The notes under the pieces are model-generated. The model ran no database searches. It was not told where the DNA came from and saw only the letters and a program-made list of their open reading frames with translations. This document shows, piece by piece, positions 41,187 to 51,400 of a DNA stretch of 59,404 bases (within the stretch, counting starts at the first letter, position 1; each line of letters opens with the position of its first letter). This stretch comes from Pelomyxa schiedti (lineage: Eukaryota > Protista > Evosea): contig JAHLWZ010000885.1 in the NCBI GenBank assembly GCA_020536535.1, forward strand, positions 1 through 59,404, given 5' to 3'. Made by a program: the position numbers and the translations under genes.

Positions 41187-44100
41187 CTAATAAAACAAAG
41201 TTCTTTTCTGTTCAAAACATACGTCTCGCGAAAGCGCCAGGAGGAATGGTGAGAGACATTGGTTGTGTAGTAGTACCTGTGGCGCCGTGTGGTTGGAACA
41301 CATGGAACTTGTAGGTTCAGCTGGAGATACTGGAGCTGTGAGTCTTTCCTTGAAGAAATACAACAGTTGAGTCAACAGCCTTGTTGTGATACTATTACCC
41401 AGTGTTGTTGGGTTTTTGAGTTGCCGCTGAATGTAGTCTACCCAAATGTCCCGCGGTACGCATTTGGCAGAGGCTGTGGGGGTCAGAAAATCATTGGTCG
41501 CTCCGCCGGCGGCCACGAGTGCCTGTGATGCTGATACACATTGCTCCATAAACTCGGAAAGGGCCATAAACAGAGAACCACACAAGTTCAGTGTAGTATT
41601 ATTGACATTGACTGGAGAGCACACTGGACATGGAGAACCTGCTCCAACATGGAGCCTAGCCAGCATAAAATCTTTCAATATATTGCAAACGTGGTCCACG
41701 GCAACAATCCGTATTTTCTCATGAGGAGAAAATTGCGGGAAGCACGAGAGAGCCGCAACTCCCTTCACCAGTATAGTGAGCCAGTCGTTCCTGTTGAAAT
41801 CCCCGGTTTCAGAATTCCACCCCACAAATCCCAGTCTTACACAGAATATTTTCCCGCGCGAACATAGACTTTCAGTTGAAACCTGGCTTACAATCTTTTC
41901 TGCAACCCACTTGCTCTGAGTATAGCCATTTTTAGAACATATGTTGTCCAATGGAAGGAGCCCTTCACTGTTGGCCACTGATGCTGAGGATACATGTACC
42001 ATATCTGAGCAGGAAAGATCCCTTAAGTGGAGAGCTGAGCATGTGCCAATAACATTTCCTTTTCTGGTAAGAGTGAGAAAGTAGAAGATTCTTGGTGCAT
42101 TATTACCTCAGAGATGAGTAAGGCGCAATATGATTTACATCTGCAGCGATATGGTAAATAAATTTAGTCCGTGAAGCAAGTTGCACAAAATCTTCTTCTG
42201 ACAAACCAAAATTGTTCAATGTGCAATCACCTTGCACTACACAAATGTCGCCCTGCTCAATGGCACTATCAAATAGAGTTGTCCAAGAAGACTGAATTTG
42301 AACAGCTTGGCGGAGTTTGCACAGTCCTACTTCTTGTGAGGAGCATCTCACAAGGCAGGCAATTTTCATGTAATCTGGTTTGAATTTCACCAAGTACATA
42401 AGCAGATGTACACCAACAAATCCTGTGGCGCCAGTTATAAAAACCGTGTCAGGTTTCTCGGGATGAGTACAGCACACGTGCTTCCTGAAACAAACACCAA
42501 TCCCCAAGTCATTGGTAATCTGATTTTTTAGCTCTTGTGTGACGTTAGTATTCGCAACCAACATCCCTATGGAGAGTCCGGCGTCAAATAGTACACTGGG
42601 TGGTACTTGTATTCCAAGCTTTTCACTTAGGGAGGTTGTTAATTTCATAGCACTTAGAGAGTCCCCTCCATGTGATAAGAAGAAGCCTGTTCATTGTTAG
42701 GCCACAAGTATTTTGGTTTCTGGGAACCAGGGGTTCCAAGAGATTCCTTTGGAACAGATAGAACGGAGCTTATTATAGACTCTATTTCTGGTTGCAAGTC
42801 ACAAACGTTAGGTTTGACATCAGTTATAAAGCACTCTCTGATTCGACTTTGGTATTTAGCATCCAGTGATGGCCTGTTTTTCTTCTGAATTACCGTAAGA
42901 AGCCCTAGAATAGAACATTTAAAGTAAAGCTGAAATATCTGTTAGAAACCGCTTTCAATTGTCCATGAAATGGGTTCCAAGAGCAGCAGAGCAGGAACTT
43001 CAAAGGGACGCAAGTGTAAACGCTTTCCCGTTTCTACAAGATGAGACATGACCTGTTTGTAGAGTTGTGCTTAGGTGAAGTCTCTGTGAGCTTGGATGTT
43101 ACTGTTTTGTGAGCTAAAGGTGACTGGACAAGAAGAGTCCAAGGAGTGGTGCTATCCTTTAAGGTCCGGCGTAATTGAGTTTCGTTGGGCACAACAATAG
43201 CTATCTATTACTTATCAGGTTTTGTTTGGGGAGTTGTAAGGCCTACTACTGCATGCTGGTGAAACTGTGTAACATTTTCGCAAGTTATGAATATCTGTTG
43301 TACAAGAGGGCACTCAGAATAAGCCTCTTCTACGGATTGGGGTGCAATAAACTCTCCCTGTAAGAGGCAAGTTCAATTGGTGAGGGACAATACTGTCACA
43401 CCCCCAATTACTTGAGATAATTTGAAGATAAACTTTTTGCGGTCCACAATCCTTATTCTTGATGGTTCAACTACTTCCACAATGTCCCCTTCAGAGTGTC
43501 AACACTGAAAAAAGCCTTCTCTTTTTCACCTGTGTGGAAGAAACCCTCACTATCAAAGGCAAATGCCGTTTCTGTGGGATTATTGTAGTACTCAGTTGCC
43601 ATAATAGGTGTTTTTACACAAATCTCCCCTCTTGGATAGGGTTTATCTGTGGCAAAATAATTCATCTCAGGCCAGTCAATGATCTGCTGAAGGTAATTAA
43701 AACAGAACTTCTGGGGCACAAGTCACCTTCCACAGATTATCTTTATTTATTTGGCCATCAATTAAAGCAATTGTTCCTGTCTCAGTGCAACCAAAACTTT
43801 CAGAAGCAACTATCGTTCAATTAATTTCCTTTCGCAAATGAATAAGGAATTACCATTTGACCCAAAGCATTCTTTTAGAAAGGAAAGAAGATTAGGACTT
43901 ACAGCAGCCCCTCCTATAGAAATACTTTTAAGACGTTTTCCCATATAAGTTTTTATCCTTGCCAATAGCTGTTGGTTTGAGAAAGACTAGAAAACACAGG
44001 TATTTAACCTTTTGTCGCTCCACTTCAACTAAGGAGGGATGAAAAAAAGGGTCACTAGCTTGCATTTCTGACATTAATTGCTGTAGCTCTGCCCTGTACT

Positions 44101-45323
44101 GTACAAACAAGACTTCGTAAAATCTTACAAATGTGAGGGCCAGATAAATTGACAATTATCTTAGAATCAACCGTGGGGTTGCTATCATATAAGTAGGACC
44201 CAAGACACGTAAATAATCATAAAGCAAGTCAATCTTATCAACGAGGCCAACCCTTCCTCCACTGCATATTGTTCGGTAGAAGAATTTTCTGTCACCACTG
44301 TTCACAAGGGAGGCTGTAAAATTTTTAAAAATCCATAAGATAGTGTGGAGAAAAGTTACCAAAGAGTGCCTCCACATGGGGATCAAAAGAAAACATTCCA
44401 TGTTGCACTACCCAAAGAAGTGATTTCTCGTAAAATGGTACACCTTTAGGAGACCCAGTACTGCCACTATTCAAAGGTGTGTGCTTTTTTACAGTGAAAA
44501 ATGACAGACCTTGTATAAATAATAGACACAATGTCCCCGGGCCGACGGTGGACAGGGAAGAAGTCAAATTTCGAAGCAGCAATTTCCTCGAGGTGATCGA
44601 CATCCACTACATACTTGAGTCTTTGACATGGAGTTGGAGTATCAATTTCAGTTGAAGACAGTGACATTAGTGGGGAGAATTCAGGTATTCTCTCAGTGTC
44701 ACAAAAAAGGAGCGTTGCACCACACTGAGCGAGAACAGTGCTCACAAATGTATAAGAGGCATGCGGATTGATAGTGACAGTGGTAAAACCCGAGATGCAA
44801 CAAGCAAGATCCAGAGATAGCCACTCTAGACTGTTCTTTGCACATATGGCAACAACTAACTGGGAAACGCCATTTGTGTTCATGTCAGACCCCCTTGTTG
44901 CAGTGATTTCAGCATCAAGGGTTCTCAGCCTCCCAACAAATTGCAGTGACAATTCCTTCACTTGAGCATAAGTTTCCCACATGAACCCAAGTGGAGTATC
45001 AGCCCTTCGTTCTGTCACTCTTCCAACACAAGGCTGGTTGCCATATTCACAAAATGCAGTCCACACACAGTCAGCCAAAGTACAACACGAAACAACACGT
45101 TGGCGCTTTGCTTGAATTGGCTCCCTACAAATATACGTCGGGTGGTCGCAATGCTCTCCCTTGCAAAAGCACGCCTATAACTCATCAGAGAAAAGGGGAA
45201 AAAAAAAAACCACCGACGTGAAAAGAAAAAGACCTCACAAATATCGTAGTCCTCACACTCACAGCAGTGCCGGAAAGGCGACCCAACGCACGTACCACCG
45301 CACACGTTGCACACTCCTTTCAT
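41187..45323 (-). CDS. NRPS-like carboxylic acid reductase (A-T-R) with an N-terminal ZZ zinc finger
   Basis: ZZ: CNVC..HCCECEDYDICE|ACF..H..H. A domain: IIYTSGSTGSPKGV, PYPRGEICVKT, GFFHTGD, IVDRKKFIFKLSQGEFIAP. T domain: FLSHGGDSLSA. R domain: VFITGATGFVG, IYHIAADVN, GYTQSKW. Confidence 0.9.
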
Positions 45324-45330
45324 CTTTTTT

Positions 45331-45401: not shown

Positions 45402-47622
45402 TCAAAAGGCGTGAGATTTGAGGGTGTCAATGAGGTCCGAGGGTATTGTTTCTGCCCAGTCGGTGCCGGTTGACAGGATTCCCATAATTCGCATCATTCT
45501 GACTGCCGGTTCGCCCAGGCACTCAACGGAGACCATCGAGCAAAGTAGGTCACTGGCTCCATGTGCGTTGGATGCCATCTCTTGCACTTGGGAATATGTC
45601 TCTTCATCATTCACTATGACGTGGTAAGAAACAACTTGCTTCCCTCTCTGCTTTGATCTCCCGAGGCTGAAGAAGTGGTGGCACTTGGCTTCAGGTGGTA
45701 GAGTCATCTTTTTTTTTTTTTGGTGTTGTGACTAGGGTGTGAAAGGGAGGGATAAAGAATCAAGTGAACACCTGTGCATTGCATGGTGAGAAACTACTGC
45801 TGTGTATGGTAACAAGCCTGGGAGATACGGCATTAAATTCTATTCCTGCCGTTTTGGGATCGGAGTGTGGCAGGTGGGCTGGCGTGACATTCTGGGTACA
45901 GAAAATCCCCATTTCGACTTCTTCTTGTATTTCAAGGTTCTCAAATTTCTGGTCTGAATAAAGCCAGAAGTGATACATCATATTAATCTATATGGAATCC
46001 AAAAACAAATCAGTCCGACAGTGTTTTACTCCTAAAAGGAAAGAGTACCTCATTGAATGAATCGCAGCTGAAATGTTGGCAGGGTCCTATTGGGGGTCTC
46101 CTGTGTACCATTGCATATATAGGAGTACTTGATGCAAGTGTCATATCTACATTTTCTATCAATTCTGGCGGGAAAGCCCCTCGGTCCATAGGAGTAAGTG
46201 GAGCCTGCACTTGAAATTTAGGTACCAAAAATCATGGTAAGCGGACCATACACACAACAGAACGATGGGTTCAGATGGCCAGTAGTCCTCGCCGTAGGTA
46301 CCAACAAGTGGTACGCAAGGAAACCCAAAGACATCAAATAATTCCACAGGAAGTGGATCATGCCCACAATGGATATTCATTTCCACGAATTTCAGAGACG
46401 CAGACACACCTGCTTGCACGGGATTAACCTGTTTTTGTAGAATCTCCTCTTGTTCCTTGGGTAGAGGCACAGTTTGTTCTTGTGGGTGCCCTGTGAATAA
46501 CGTTTCCTTTTCGAGGATTTTATCATTGCTGGGTGCGGATTCAATACTAGTGCTAATTTGAGTGTTGACATGGTGATCTTCTTGTACTGGGGGTATTTCA
46601 GATATGAAGTCTGGGGTGTGAGAAATGTGAAGTTCTGGTTCTAAAGTAGGTTCTTGAGAGACTGCTGCCTCTTCCCTCCCATGTTCATTGTTCCTTTCCA
46701 TGTGACTCTGTTCTGCTTCTCGGGTCAAAGACTCAACTTCGTGTGTAGTATGGACAGCGAAGTGTGGCGAAACTTTCGGTTCATCAAAATATGACGGAAT
46801 TGCATGAGGTGACCTTTTCCGCAGGAGGTTTTTGGCAAACAGCAACAGTCCTATTGTTGTGCGCAAGCCGTAAATAGCCACCTGAAGAGAAACCAAGAGT
46901 CCAAGTAGTGGTAAAAAGCACACAGCGGACACCAAACTGTTGGGCCAATGGACTGACCTCCAAATCGAAATGGTAGCTTCCGATTCCGCATCGCCGTCCT
47001 CTTCCTCGTTCTTTTGAATTCCCTGCAATCGACGCCGAATCCTGCCGAGAGGAGGAGCAGGAGGAGGAACTTGCAGTTCTGCCAAAGTCCCCCCCTCGGT
47101 GTTAGTGCAGGTCGCTGTGCTTCCGCTCGCCCGCGCGAATCTGGGAGGGGCGAACTGCGGCGGGTCGACGTAGGGCCGACTGGGCATTTGCCTCTCGGGC
47201 CGTCTGCTGCTGGCCGCGGCTGCAGAAGCTCCGCTCATGGGAGATTCTCCGGGACTCGCCTGGCTGGCTGTTGCGGACGGCCTTGGGGGTTTTTGATCAG
47301 GCGCAGGAGCAACTATGGGTGCTTCTGGACACTGGGTGTCGGGTTTCGAGGCGACAAGTTGGTCGCCGCCGTTGTGCCCAGTGCCAACTACTTCGAAGGC
47401 GGTCCCTGTGGGTGGAAATTTTCCCACAATTGCAGCATCGTGGGCCGCACCTGCACTCGTAGATGTGTGGTCCCCAGTGATCCTGCTTGCAGCGGGTGTC
47501 AAGACAGCGACCCTCGCTGCACTGCTAAGCCTAGAATTGCACAAAGAGCAAAAACATGCCTGAAACGCTCTCTCTTGTGTGCCAACAACCACCGAATTGC
47601 GCCCCGATACTACAAGCAACAT
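45402..47622 (-). CDS. Hypothetical protein with one hydrophobic segment and a globular C-terminal region
   Basis: 487-codon ORF plus three downstream exons joined by GT-AG introns. TM-like LVSAVCFLPLLGLLVSLQVAIYGL. The true start may be the ATG at 47238. Confidence 0.6.
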
Positions 47623-47649
47623 AACAAGTCAATAGAAACTGATCAGAGA

Positions 47650-48434: not shown

Positions 48435-51400
48435 CTATGATTCAGTGAGAGAAATACACCAGAGGTGGTTATCACGAGACCCAAAAGCTAGCCTGCTGCC
48501 CACAACAACGGGGCTGCTGAAGACAGGCACCTCCGCGTGTACTTCACCCTGGCTCTGTCCCATAACTCTGCTTTTGCTTAGGTGTGCGACCCGGCTCTTC
48601 CAGGCTGGTGGTTGAACCACTTCCTCACAATCCCATGGGCCAGGTGTGCCGGTCAGGGTGCACACATCACCACCACTGCTCACACAAAGTGCTGTTACTT
48701 CTATTGTTGTAGATGCTGCTGATGTATTTGTGGTAGTAGTTGTTTGTGTTTCTGCTGAACTTGTTTGGGGTGTTTTGATCCAGAGGGGGGAGCCAAACAC
48801 GACGCCTGCCAGTTTGTCTGATATGGCTATGTTCTTGCCGGTGGTGCCGTGGATTATATACATTCTCCCGTCGTGGGCTCCAAAGGCCACCAACTGCATC
48901 AGTACACTGGGTGAAGAGAATACCGGTGATCCACAGTTGAACTCCCACAGCCTCCCACCACTTTGCATGTCCAGTCCACACACAGCTCCAGTGCAACACC
49001 CCACAACGAGAATTGCATTGCCGCCATTTCCAGATACAAGGCCCGGTGTGCTGAATACGGCGGAATTGAGGTTTTCTTGCCATAGTGTAATCAGAGGTGA
49101 CTTGGCCCTCATGCTGTGCTGATCGGGGAGTACGGCCTGTATGTTGGAGTGGCACTGATATGCATACAAATGTCCAGCTGTTGTGACAATAGCAATGATA
49201 CCCGTAGTGGGATCCTCTGTTGGGGTACAATAAACTGGTGCCCGGACATCAGTTTTCAGTAAATCGGCCAGTTGGCTGTCACTGGAGCCGCTCAGCTCAC
49301 GTGTGGCAACAGTGTAAATGTTTTTATCATAGGAACCAAACCACAGTGTGCCACTTCGAACACAAATATGTGCAGTACATTTGATTTCTGCACCTGTTTG
49401 AATTTTGCGGATAACGGCACCTGTCCTTGAATTGAGTATATACATGTAGGAGTCATAGGACCCTAGGCAGATGTTAAAAGGAAAGAAAAATGTACACAAA
49501 TATACCTATCAATAGGGTGTCACCAGTTTGTGTAGGAACACAGCTACTTTCAATACGGCCTCCCAGCTTGGTAGCCCATAATGTTGAGGATGTCTTTGTC
49601 AAGTATTAGTGCTAACTTGACTGTAAAGTTACATACGTTCAAGTCTATTGCATAGACATGATGATCATGTGAACCGACATACGTAATTCTAGACAACGTA
49701 ACTGCGAATCTTAAACTGGGAGAGCATACAAACGAAGAAGAGATTCGGGATTACTGCTAGACCAAGCCATTACAAGTGGGCTATTTATATTTATTGATAT
49801 CAGTGTATAAAGGTACAAGAATGACAAGAAAAATACCTGGAATCCACACATTCGCGAAGAAATTTCCGCCATTCAATCTGTAGAGTTAAGTCATGTGACC
49901 GGCATGCTTTGCCTTGCCCATGGACAAGATGAATGCATGAAAGTTCGTATGACCATTCAGTTATTTGGCAGATATGACAGCTCCATTTGTTTTTGTGGTG
50001 AGACCATCTTGGATGAAAGTCTGCAGAGAGTAAATCCATAGCCGGTCGATCGTCTGTGCTTGCAGTTAATGTGTTAACAGAGTCAGACTTGGAGCTGGTG
50101 AGCCATTTGAGAAGGAGGTCAACTGATGTCTTTAAACGGTTATGAAGCAAACAGTTGACTAGTCTAGTATTCATGAAACAAGGTTTGGAAGCACAGCGGG
50201 ATATACATAGCATTCCTATCTTCTTCAGCAGTGTCGTTGAAAATTACTGCAATAATGATCAGAATAAGGGAATACATGGGTGGTAGGTACATAAGTGTTC
50301 AAGTAGCCTCTCTACAAGGTGCACGCAATCCAAGGAAGAACCCCCATAGCTCAGCAGAAACACATTTTCTTGATCAGAAAGAGGAAAGTCTGGAAAAGCT
50401 CAAAACTGTGGTCAAAAAAAAAAAAAAAGGTAACTACCTGGGGCTACAGATTTACCCAAAAATAAGACAAACCACATTTCCAAGATGAAATTAGTCAGTG
50501 TCGCTGAGGTCCATAATAGTCCTGGAGAAAGGACTCGAGAATTCAACGGTAAAATGACTTGTTTGCAATTTGACTTGGTAATGGCAGGCACATTTACCTG
50601 GCACCTTTATTGAGATTGAAATTTACTGTAGTTTGGCATAAATACCTTTCCGTTTGGAGTGACTGGAATGTCCTGCGAGGAGCTAAACATGTAAATTTTT
50701 GAAGGTTGCATGTGGGATGGTAACGATCTTTGTATATGCACAGTGAGGCCTTCTTTGAATTAGTAATAGAAATCTTGAGAGGGATACAAAACTTGGAATG
50801 TCGATATTCTCTCTTGGCAGGATAGCAGCTTGCAATCCTTTGTCGTTGTCTTCTTCAACTGGGAATACCCTAATAATAATCATGAAACTTGACTGTCGAT
50901 ATTTGATATACAACTACCAAGCGACTTCCACTGAAGGATGCTTCATGAGACAAGATTCCACTTCCTCTGGTTGTACCCTCTTTGCGCGGATCTTGACCAT
51001 TCTACCAAGTCTGCCTGTGAATGAATAGAACTTCTGACCCAAGACAGAATTGACTGAGAATAGGTCCCCAGTTGGCCTCTGAAATGTAGATGTGTTCTCA
51101 AAGTTACTGCACGAAAAATGGGATATTAGGTGGCCATGACCCTCCCAAAGAATGGGGAAAGCTTACTGAGAGCTTAACTGTGACACTGTGAAGCAATGTC
51201 TGCCCCCAACGAACATCTGTCCGATGCCGTTGTCGATGAGTGCACCAGAAGTATCACGAATGAAAAGACTTGTTTCTCTGAAAGCCTTGGAGACGGGAAC
51301 AGGATCGGACGTAAGTGTATCCACAGAAATTGGAGGCAAAAGGTGATAGGCAGACCACTGGGTGCGATTAGCTGAAAACAGAGCAGGAGAATGGATCAAC

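Follow-up and report, generated by a model that had tools for sequence, protein, structure and literature searches.

A ZZ zinc finger joined to a carboxylic acid reductase-like protein in the anaerobic amoeba Pelomyxa schiedti and other protists

Carboxylic acid reductases (CARs) are prized as biocatalysts and, to our knowledge, have been studied almost entirely in actinobacteria and fungi. In the bacterial CAR/FadD9 enzymes (NF041592; PDB 5MSO, 5MSC and 5MSP), an adenylation (A) domain is followed by a phosphopantetheinyl carrier (T) domain and a thioester reductase (R) domain, and a PPTase is needed for activity; the mechanism and this requirement have been described (PMC5396282). The fungal alpha-aminoadipate reductase Lys2 (TIGR03443) and the fungal CARs of types II-IV are likewise A-T-R enzymes requiring a PPTase. 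We know of no Lys2 protein with a ZZ zinc finger; as far as is known, this type of domain otherwise occurs in proteins that read N-degrons or chromatin and in E3 ligases. The N-recognin p62/SQSTM1 (PDB 5YP7, 6MIU and 7R1O) carries its ZZ finger in a protein that is not a metabolic enzyme, and its residues D129, D147 and D149 are each required for binding of Nt-Arg, with D149 holding the alpha-amino group (PMC6197226).

The window investigated here, i.e. the whole 59,404-nucleotide stretch of P. schiedti contig JAHLWZ010000885.1, contains a genuine, transcribed gene of the ZZ-CAR type. Its protein comprises four domains in one chain, namely a ZZ zinc finger, an A domain, a T domain and an R domain of the NAD(P)H-dependent thioester reductase type. 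The features of the locus are as follows:

41187 to 45323, minus strand: whole ZZ-A-T-R coding region, 15 exons and 14 GT-AG introns (40-59 nt), 1165 aa, frame-checked model
45234 to 45323, minus strand: exon 1, 30 codons (Met1-Glu30) with ligands C5, C8, C20, C23 and C29
45175 to 45233, minus strand: intron 1, 59 nt, GT..AG, interrupting the ZZ finger after C29-E30 and before A31-C32
45142 to 45311, minus strand: ZZ zinc finger, residues 5-41, span including intron 1, all eight ligands found
42879 to 45087, minus strand: adenylation (ANL) domain, about residues 60-630, exons 2-13, Pfam AMP-binding
42538 to 42785, minus strand: carrier (T, phosphopantetheine) domain, about residues 662-730, PP-binding, GGDSLS (Ser690)
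41679 to 42444, minus strand: thioester reductase (R) domain, about residues 762-1016, NAD_binding_4 and TIGR01746 matches
42064 to 43102, minus strand: span of introns 11-14, all four supported by joints in RNA contigs
41187 to 41678, minus strand: poorly conserved C-terminal tail with the stop codon (41187-41189), from the gene model

The start codon at 45323 is the first ATG in frame, and an in-frame stop lies seven codons upstream. The N-terminal two thirds of the ZZ finger are encoded by exon 1, and a ZZ scan of the organism's own genome matched 45225-45326. The length of intron 1 is not a multiple of three, so that its retention stops the frame after 102 aa. Exon 2 begins at 45174, and the frame continues from there through 13 further GT-AG introns to the stop codon. 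An earlier note on this DNA had proposed that removal of 45175-45233 gives a complete ZZ finger in frame with the A, T and R domains; the coordinates proved exact, with all eight ligands present in an open frame of 1165 aa. The ligands after splicing are C5, C8, C20, C23, C29, C32, H38 and H41, in the order C-x2-C, C-x2-C, C-x2-C, H-x2-H, and the splice rebuilds one C-x2-C pair (C29/C32) across the junction. An intron at the same position was found in the paralog on contig C292, and intron 1 is also spliced out in the deposited model. The joined spliced model served only in checking the frame, in local alignment, in building the tree and in assessing the effects of variants; the database searches were carried out with single exons or with the deposited protein KAH3745124.1, which equals the model over residues 1-723.

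This deposited protein, named FadD9 ('long-chain fatty-acid-CoA ligase FadD9'), shows that the gene, ZZ exon included, was already in GenBank; the ligase name derives from a partial likeness to long-chain acyl-CoA synthetases. KAH3745124.1 has 1063 aa and is partly mis-spliced, residues 1-723 matching the new model at 722 of 723 positions. RNA contigs were unspliced over 41248-42063, contradicting an extra terminal intron of the deposited model, and showed 42107-42685 as a single unspliced exon. Introns 11-14 (43102-43053, 42949-42905, 42727-42687 and 42106-42064) were borne out by RNA contigs, their joints appearing with CT..AC ends on the plus strand in three RNA runs and being absent from the DNA run. 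The junction of the ZZ intron (exon 1/exon 2, 45234|45174), for which the earlier note had suggested confirmation by cDNA, was crossed by no RNA contig. A further RNA contig (44823-45166) covered the His ligands of the ZZ finger together with the N-terminus of the A domain.

Pfam searches exon by exon detected AMP-binding (4e-11), PP-binding (8e-9) and NAD_binding_4 (1e-25 and 3e-14), and the deposited protein gave AMP-binding at 6e-42 and PP-binding at 7e-10 in the same order. The A domain contains the motifs A3 (SGSTGSPKG, residue 252), A5 (FGCTE, 417), A7 (FHTGD, 488), A8 (RKKFIFKLSQGEF, 507) and the A10 Lys in QKKNRP (about 629-630), and the R domain contains the Rossmann motif TGATGFVG (765) and YTQSK (921). 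All of these, as well as the carrier Ser, were in register with the CARs of Mycobacterium, Nocardia and Streptomyces; the alignment with bacterial CARs also comprised the CAR-type hinge KLSQGEF, the A10 Lys within GLLT..K..RP, GGDSLS, the Rossmann motif and YxxxK. The solved structures nearest to the A domain were the CARs 5mso/5msc/5msp (1e-58 to 1e-53), followed by the next ANL enzyme at 1e-15, a gap of about 40 orders in E-value. NF041592 (carboxylic acid reductase, EC 1.2.1.30) was the best NCBIfam family for the protein and its relatives, with scores of 310 bits for KAH3745124.1 and 355-445 bits for the relatives, below the equivalog cut-off of 1300 bits. By these matches, the A-T-R part is closest to bacterial CAR/FadD9; at 310 bits and 23-24% identity to bacterial CARs, the likeness is too remote to fix the substrate or the product (aldehyde versus alcohol). 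The match to the long-chain acyl-CoA synthetase families (NF004837 and relatives) scored 118 bits, short of the cut-off of 476, and unlike such stand-alone ANL enzymes the protein extends into T and R domains. Identity with Lys2 was rejected, the match to TIGR03443 (cut-off 1030 bits) reaching about 100 bits and comprising the R domain only; the A domain is FadD9/LACS-like, in contrast to that of Lys2. When the ZZ finger plus the N-terminal part of the A domain of the protein P0012 was searched in the ESM Atlas, the look-alikes were bacterial acyl-CoA ligase clusters only. A PPTase-family gene, as needed to make the holo-enzyme, is present in the same genome, with a PF01648 match above cut-off on contig C561. 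None of the bacterial CARs among the search matches had an N-terminal ZZ finger, in contrast to the protein of the window.

Exon 1 alone scored 21.6 bits (E 2e-4) against Pfam ZZ (PF00569; gathering cut-off 21.4), whereas the complete spliced finger (residues 1-60 of KAH3745124.1) scored 19.4 bits, below this cut-off. It was nevertheless assigned as a ZZ finger because its ligands align with those of p62 (phmmer to the p62 ZZ, 1.5e-5), because the predicted structure overlays on ZZ domains, and because the paralogs score strongly (34-39 bits). The AlphaFold (AF2) model had a pLDDT of 85-95 over residues 1-50, and the Foldseek matches listed for it were ZZ domains almost throughout, p62 being the best (rmsd 1.1-1.5 A, TM 0.83-0.88). 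Likeness to p62 thus consists of the Cys/His ligand pattern, 33-35% identity and the close AF2 overlay, while the host protein is an enzyme rather than an autophagy receptor or E3 ligase. Within the family, the ligand columns are conserved except for the fourth Cys, which is N, K, E or Q in the myxomycete and Protostelium members; in these, one zinc site is therefore degenerate. The Asp equivalent to p62 D149 was invariant in 19/19 family members and was retained even where the zinc ligand is lost. Of the p62-type pocket (D129/D147/D149 plus N132 and R139), only the equivalents of D147 (D25) and D149 (D27) are retained in the window copy; D129 is replaced by Asn (N6), N132 by Gly (G9) and R139 by Phe (F17). 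Because of these replacements, a p62-like Arg reader is not predicted; judging from the residues present, generic binding of amino termini could conceivably occur. The paralog on contig C564 has the equivalents of D129, R139, D147 and D149.

At least eight ZZ-A-T-R loci were found in the 52-Mb genome of P. schiedti, i.e. the gene of the window and seven others. On contigs C564, C929 and C292, ZZ and R-domain matches lie about 3 kb apart on one strand, and on C798, C530, C158 and C795, CAR-like ORFs are preceded by ZZ-like N-termini. A second Pelomyxa subfamily has an insert of 4-6 residues in the finger and a ZZ score under the Pfam cut-off. The combination of ZZ with A-T-R was also detected in Mastigamoeba balamuthi, Protostelium nocturnum (EukProt), Anaeramoeba flamelloides, myxomycete-like transcripts and metagenome contigs, while relatives from Acrasis and Naegleria had no ZZ finger. 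The protist proteins (Pelomyxa KAH3744291.1 and KAH3757633.1, A. flamelloides KAJ3432268.1, and those of M. balamuthi and P. nocturnum) share the architecture and the same or a neighbouring clade with the window protein at 27-35% identity; they are annotated merely as FadD9, CAR or fatty-acid CoA synthetase, and some differ by an N-terminal leader, by degeneration of the second zinc site or by the finger insert. A homologue search with the family alignment gave matches dominated by bacterial CARs and zero new ZZ members. The rarity implied in the earlier note therefore did not hold, as at least eight loci in one genome and at least four other protist lineages carry the fusion, all of them public as unstudied proteins. 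That note had counted it against its own reading if the architecture were already common and characterised: it is present in public databases, but the literature searched yielded no paper on, or characterised case of, a ZZ-CAR, in agreement with the note's own statement that none was known. The ZZ-CAR fusion is an old, unstudied amoebal enzyme family and not a one-off. The upstream ORF at 46162-47628 (minus strand) was also considered as a lost N-terminal module or conserved partner and was rejected, being unique in the genome and unlinked to the other ZZ-CAR loci.

In the phylogenetic tree, the window protein clustered with amoebozoan ZZ-CARs (SH-aLRT 99), and the bacterial CARs formed one separate clade (support 100, branch length 1.14). 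Because a long branch with full support lies between the eukaryotic proteins and the bacterial CARs, any transfer would be old. The A-domain matches, the intron count and this branch agree with the earlier description of the A domain as LACS/bacterial-CAR-like, rich in introns and, if of horizontal origin, anciently acquired. Pelomyxa schiedti is an intron-rich organism, with 7.43 introns per gene (PMC8887013). A recent bacterial transfer or contamination was dismissed because the gene differs from bacterial CAR genes in its 14 host-typical spliceosomal introns, the 23-24% identity of its product and the separate clade. As for the ZZ finger, it belongs to the ancestral make-up of this eukaryotic enzyme family and is no local accident.

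We consider it likely that the locus is an expressed nuclear gene for a ZZ-A-T-R enzyme with CAR-like chemistry, in which the ZZ finger would act as a protein-binding or regulatory module. By analogy, the A-T-R part would most likely work like bacterial CAR/FadD9: the A domain would adenylate a carboxylic acid with ATP, the acyl group would pass to the phosphopantetheine arm on Ser690, and the R domain would reduce the thioester with NADPH, releasing an aldehyde. Our best guess for the substrate would be a fatty or other non-amino carboxylic acid, because the A domain is LACS/FadD9-like. The finger itself is most likely a small zinc-stabilised, putative protein-binding module that may tether the enzyme to a partner or regulate it.

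That the ZZ exon is a gene-model artefact, absent from the transcript of the reductase, would agree with the lack of an RNA contig across 45234|45174, but is extremely improbable. Exon 2 supplies C32, H38 and H41 and runs on directly into the A domain; the His ligands lie within an RNA contig, and no Met precedes the conserved A-domain core in this exon. The exact C-x2-C spacing is regained by the splice, the C292 intron lies at the same place, and seven paralogs as well as other species show the same architecture. It is also very unlikely that this paralog is drifting to loss of function within a functional family. Such a drift would fit its terminal branch, which at 1.88 is longer than that of any other Pelomyxa paralog, and its ZZ score, the weakest within the canonical subfamily. 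No sign of purifying selection on the copy was seen in 13 coding differences of RNA or other DNA contigs from the assembly, 11 of which were nonsynonymous, a small count from single-cell-amplified material. The frame of 1165 codons is, however, open over 15 exons with all catalytic motifs intact, the gene is transcribed and correctly spliced at introns 11-14, and six of the 11 nonsynonymous variants fall at or after residue 1013, the unconserved tail accounting for five of them and the extreme end of the R domain for the sixth.

Two further explanations concern the finger. It might be a structural or vestigial, ligand-free zinc knot whose only effect would be to keep the N-terminal A-domain lobe stable or soluble, a possible but on balance unlikely role. 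Loss of the fourth Cys in the myxomycete and Protostelium members, the insert in the second Pelomyxa subfamily with its score below the Pfam cut-off, and the relatives in Acrasis and Naegleria that lack the finger entirely are consistent with it; on the other hand, an N-terminal finger has been kept across deep divergence (about 27-35% identity of the enzymes), and eight paralogs of one genome retain it with ligand columns and surface Asp conserved. Somewhat more doubtful is a role along the lines of the earlier note, which inferred recruitment or regulation of the enzyme by protein N-termini or free amino acids: the finger would read N-termini, like the ZZ domains of p62, p300, HERC2 and KCMF1, and would recruit or switch the reductase through the free alpha-amino ends of proteins, peptides or amino acids. 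The nearest structures by sequence and fold were p62 with N-degron peptides, HERC2, p300-H3, KCMF1, BIG and PRT1, which points in this direction, as do the invariant Asp and the retained D147 equivalent in the window copy and the fuller set of pocket residues in C564. Asn, Gly and Phe at the D129, N132 and R139 positions argue against it, as p62 needed each of its three Asp residues. The conserved Asp is moreover a feature of the ZZ consensus in general, and its role may be a structural one. The module that binds a partner protein or regulates the enzyme, in the broader sense given above, is the reading we prefer.

The locus is a member of a separate, old eukaryotic CAR branch bearing an added ZZ finger, which the Acrasis and Naegleria relatives lack. 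If the finger is only structural, what results is an amended annotation together with a family defined for further study. Should it have a ligand, this would, as far as is known, be the first example of a metabolic enzyme under the control of a ZZ domain, and it would provide a handle for finding the products of these reductases in anaerobic amoebae. A more specific proposal, distinctly unlikely, is that the finger would sense free amino termini, be they those of a partner protein or processed peptide or those of an amino compound, and thereby gate or localise an aldehyde-producing reductase. Were this true, NRPS-like chemistry would be under regulation by the state of N-termini, an arrangement extending from Archamoebae to myxomycetes and Anaeramoeba and multiplied to eight copies in one anaerobic amoeba. 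The presence of eight copies in one 52-Mb genome suggests a real metabolic role.

On translation of the minus strand from 45323 to 41187 in three frames, the ATG at 45323 proved to be the earliest in its frame, with a stop seven codons upstream. The reading frame was resolved into the following features, with Pfam searches run exon by exon.

45323-45234 (-): exon 1, 30 residues with C-x2-C, a second C-x2-C and then a Cys; ZZ finger (Pfam 21.6 bits, cut-off 21.4)
45233-45175 (-): intron 1, 59 bases, beginning with GT and ending with AG
from 45174 (-): exon 2, with the second Cys of the split pair and two His residues; AMP-binding (Pfam 4e-11), weakly also in the following exons
exon 14 (-): 580 nt; PP-binding (Pfam 8e-9) and NAD_binding_4 (Pfam 1e-25)
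last exon (-): NAD_binding_4 (Pfam 3e-14)

The last Cys of exon 1 is unpaired and exon 2 supplies its partner, so that splicing rebuilds a C-x2-C motif across the junction and completes the ZZ ligand set (C5, C8, C20, C23, C29, C32, H38 and H41); the Pfam score of the spliced finger was just below the cut-off. If intron 1 is retained, the frame closes after 102 residues, since 59 bases are not a multiple of three. With this intron and thirteen further GT-AG introns of 40-54 nt (introns 2-14) removed, the open frame comprises 1165 codons, with its stop at 41187-41189 (-). An earlier note had proposed that excision of 45175-45233 joins a ZZ finger in frame to adenylation (A), carrier (T) and thioester reductase (R) domains of the carboxylic acid reductase (CAR) type; the in-frame ZZ-A-T-R gene at 45323-41187 was confirmed. 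An upstream gene (45402-45707, -), covered by an RNA contig over 45416-45600, ends only 78 nt before the ZZ-CAR ATG. An ACSF4/AASDH-type beta-propeller (48438-49505, -; Pfam Beta-prop_ACSF4, 3e-44) is encoded on this strand two genes further upstream of the ZZ-CAR gene, and the intervening ORF 46162-47628 (489 aa) had no Pfam match and no second copy in the genome.

In GenBank the gene is represented by KAH3745124.1, a 'long-chain fatty-acid-CoA ligase FadD9' of 1063 aa, which was used for full-length queries. In this deposited model the ZZ exon is already spliced to the A domain; the model is identical to ours over residues 1-723, and its errors lie within 41187-42686 (-), where a splice inside exon 14 deletes the Rossmann motif TGATGFVG and an extra terminal intron is introduced. 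RNA contigs were continuous over 42107-42685 and 41248-42063, and the true product is therefore about 1165 aa, not 1063.

Contigs of the ZZ-CAR gene were present in all three single-cell RNA-seq runs, which derive from one sample. They showed four joints with minus-strand GT..AG ends (43102-43053, 42949-42905, 42727-42687 and 42106-42064), none of which was present in the DNA run. One RNA contig, over 44823-45166, encodes the ZZ His ligands together with the ~110 residues that follow them. No RNA contig in the three runs crossed the junction of exons 1 and 2, and we therefore infer this splice; the case for it is strong, because half of the finger shares an exon with the A domain, no Met precedes the conserved core in exon 2, the exact ligand spacing is restored, and an intron occurs at the same place in the paralog on contig C292. 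Between 41284 and 45313, RNA or other DNA contigs differ from the assembly at 13 coding positions, and 11 of these differences change an amino acid (for example V4E, Y778S and C829R). Six of the 11 fall at residue 1013 or later, within the unconserved tail or at its edge. These differences may reflect allelic variation among pooled cells, amplification errors or weak constraint. With counts this small and single-cell amplified material, this copy may or may not be under weak constraint. The window's copy has the longest terminal branch among the Pelomyxa copies in the tree.

The best NCBIfam family of the window's protein and its relatives was NF041592, carboxylic acid reductase; their scores of 310-445 bits lie under its equivalog cut-off of 1300. 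Among solved proteins the nearest were CARs, from Mycobacterium marinum, Nocardia iowensis and Segniliparus rugosus (1e-58 to 1e-53); the best ANL enzyme after them scored 1e-15. A local alignment placed the P-loop, A5, A7, the CAR-type hinge KLSQGEF, the A10 Lys, the carrier Ser, the Rossmann motif and YxxxK in register with their counterparts in actinobacterial CARs, at an overall identity of 23-24%. CARs adenylate an acid and load it onto a phosphopantetheine arm, which a PPTase has to install; the thioester is then reduced to the aldehyde at the expense of NADPH, and the substrates of the bacterial enzymes are aromatic acids and C4-C18 fatty acids (PMC5396282). A PPTase-family gene is carried by contig C561. 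From the family assignment, the nearest structures, the aligned motifs, the CAR mechanism and this PPTase gene, we read the A-T-R part as CAR-like in its working, but not as an equivalog of the bacterial enzyme; an acid would be adenylated, carried as a thioester and reduced to an aldehyde.

The solved domains closest in sequence to the finger were the ZZ domains of fission-yeast Nbr1 and human p62. Residues 1-70 were modelled with AlphaFold from 19 family sequences; the pLDDT was 85-95 across the finger, and the model superposed on the p62 ZZ at 1.1-1.5 A (TM 0.83-0.88); almost all structure matches listed were ZZ domains, many solved with N-terminal peptides. In p62, an N-terminal Arg is bound in a groove of D129, N132, D147 and D149. 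Its alpha-amino group contacts D129, D149 and a backbone carbonyl; R139 assists, and none of the Asp residues is dispensable (PMC6197226). At the four groove positions the window's copy carries N, G, D and D, with F in place of R139; the paralog on C564 retains D129, R139, D147 and D149. Every member of the ZZ-CAR family has the Asp that corresponds to D149, and most have Arg at the R139 position. Judged from these residues, a generic amino-terminus pocket is possible in the window's ZZ, while this copy is not expected to share the Arg specificity of p62.

The whole P. schiedti genome was scanned for ZZ and NAD_binding_4. On each of C564, C929 and C292 the two likewise lie on one strand with ~3 kb between them, and stop-free segments there carry, in order, ZZ, SGSTGxPKG, GGDSL and GxTGFxG. 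Four further CAR-like loci, on C798 (encoding KAH3757633.1, 100% identity), C530, C158 and C795 (L004-L008), are intron-poor and begin with a ZZ variant that has a 4-6 residue insert preceding D-x-C and scores mostly below Pfam's cut-off; these insert-type copies form a second subfamily, with its own starred clade in the maximum-likelihood tree. The genome also held 34 NAD_binding_4 matches on ~20 contigs, with open frames of 1000-2400 aa among them, a thioester/fatty-acyl reductase-type gene set that is unusually large for an anaerobic amoeba with a genome of 52 Mb.

Exon 2, used as query in an exhaustive search without a profile, matched only 35 proteins at E < 1e-3 among 1.8 billion, many with an N-terminal ZZ ahead of the AMP-binding domain. 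ZZ-bearing sources included Mastigamoeba balamuthi, Protostelium nocturnum, Anaeramoeba flamelloides, two metagenome clusters and two transcript-derived proteins 56% identical to a Physarum polycephalum sequence; ZZ was absent from the Acrasis and Naegleria relatives. The M. balamuthi protein P0031 (1566 aa) has a trehalase domain (2.5e-49) N-terminal to ZZ-A-T-R, probably two adjacent genes merged in the gene model. The ZZ ligand columns and one Asp were invariant in the family alignment (A2), except for the fourth Cys, which is N, K, E or Q in myxomycete and Protostelium proteins (P0012, P0036, P0038, P0039 and P0008); their second zinc site therefore looks degenerate, and the Asp matching p62 D149 is still invariant there. 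In the literature searched, no paper linked a ZZ domain to any carboxylic acid reductase, FadD9 or thioester reductase, and ZZ-CAR genes are not discussed in the part of the Pelomyxa genome paper covered here (PMC8887013). The interpretation of the earlier note held in part: the ZZ finger does stand on a CAR-type reductase, but the combination is not a one-off, since the window's gene, the three paralogs and the four insert-type loci bring the ZZ-A-T-R loci of this genome to at least eight, and others occur in other protists.

The maximum-likelihood tree comprised 36 proteins, 17 of them bacterial CARs, and a fully supported branch of length 1.14 split these 17 from all eukaryotic and ZZ-bearing rows. 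The window's protein clustered with the C929 paralog, and both joined the Mastigamoeba, Protostelium and myxomycete sequences at SH-aLRT 99. The tree, which is unrooted and has long branches, shows no recent transfer and is silent on direction. The 14 introns of the gene, in a genome averaging 7.4 per gene (PMC8887013), are consistent with the suggestion that any horizontal origin would be old. The gene encodes a reductase of the CAR type and belongs to an old eukaryotic branch, the members of which bear an N-terminal ZZ finger; it is already in public databases but unstudied.
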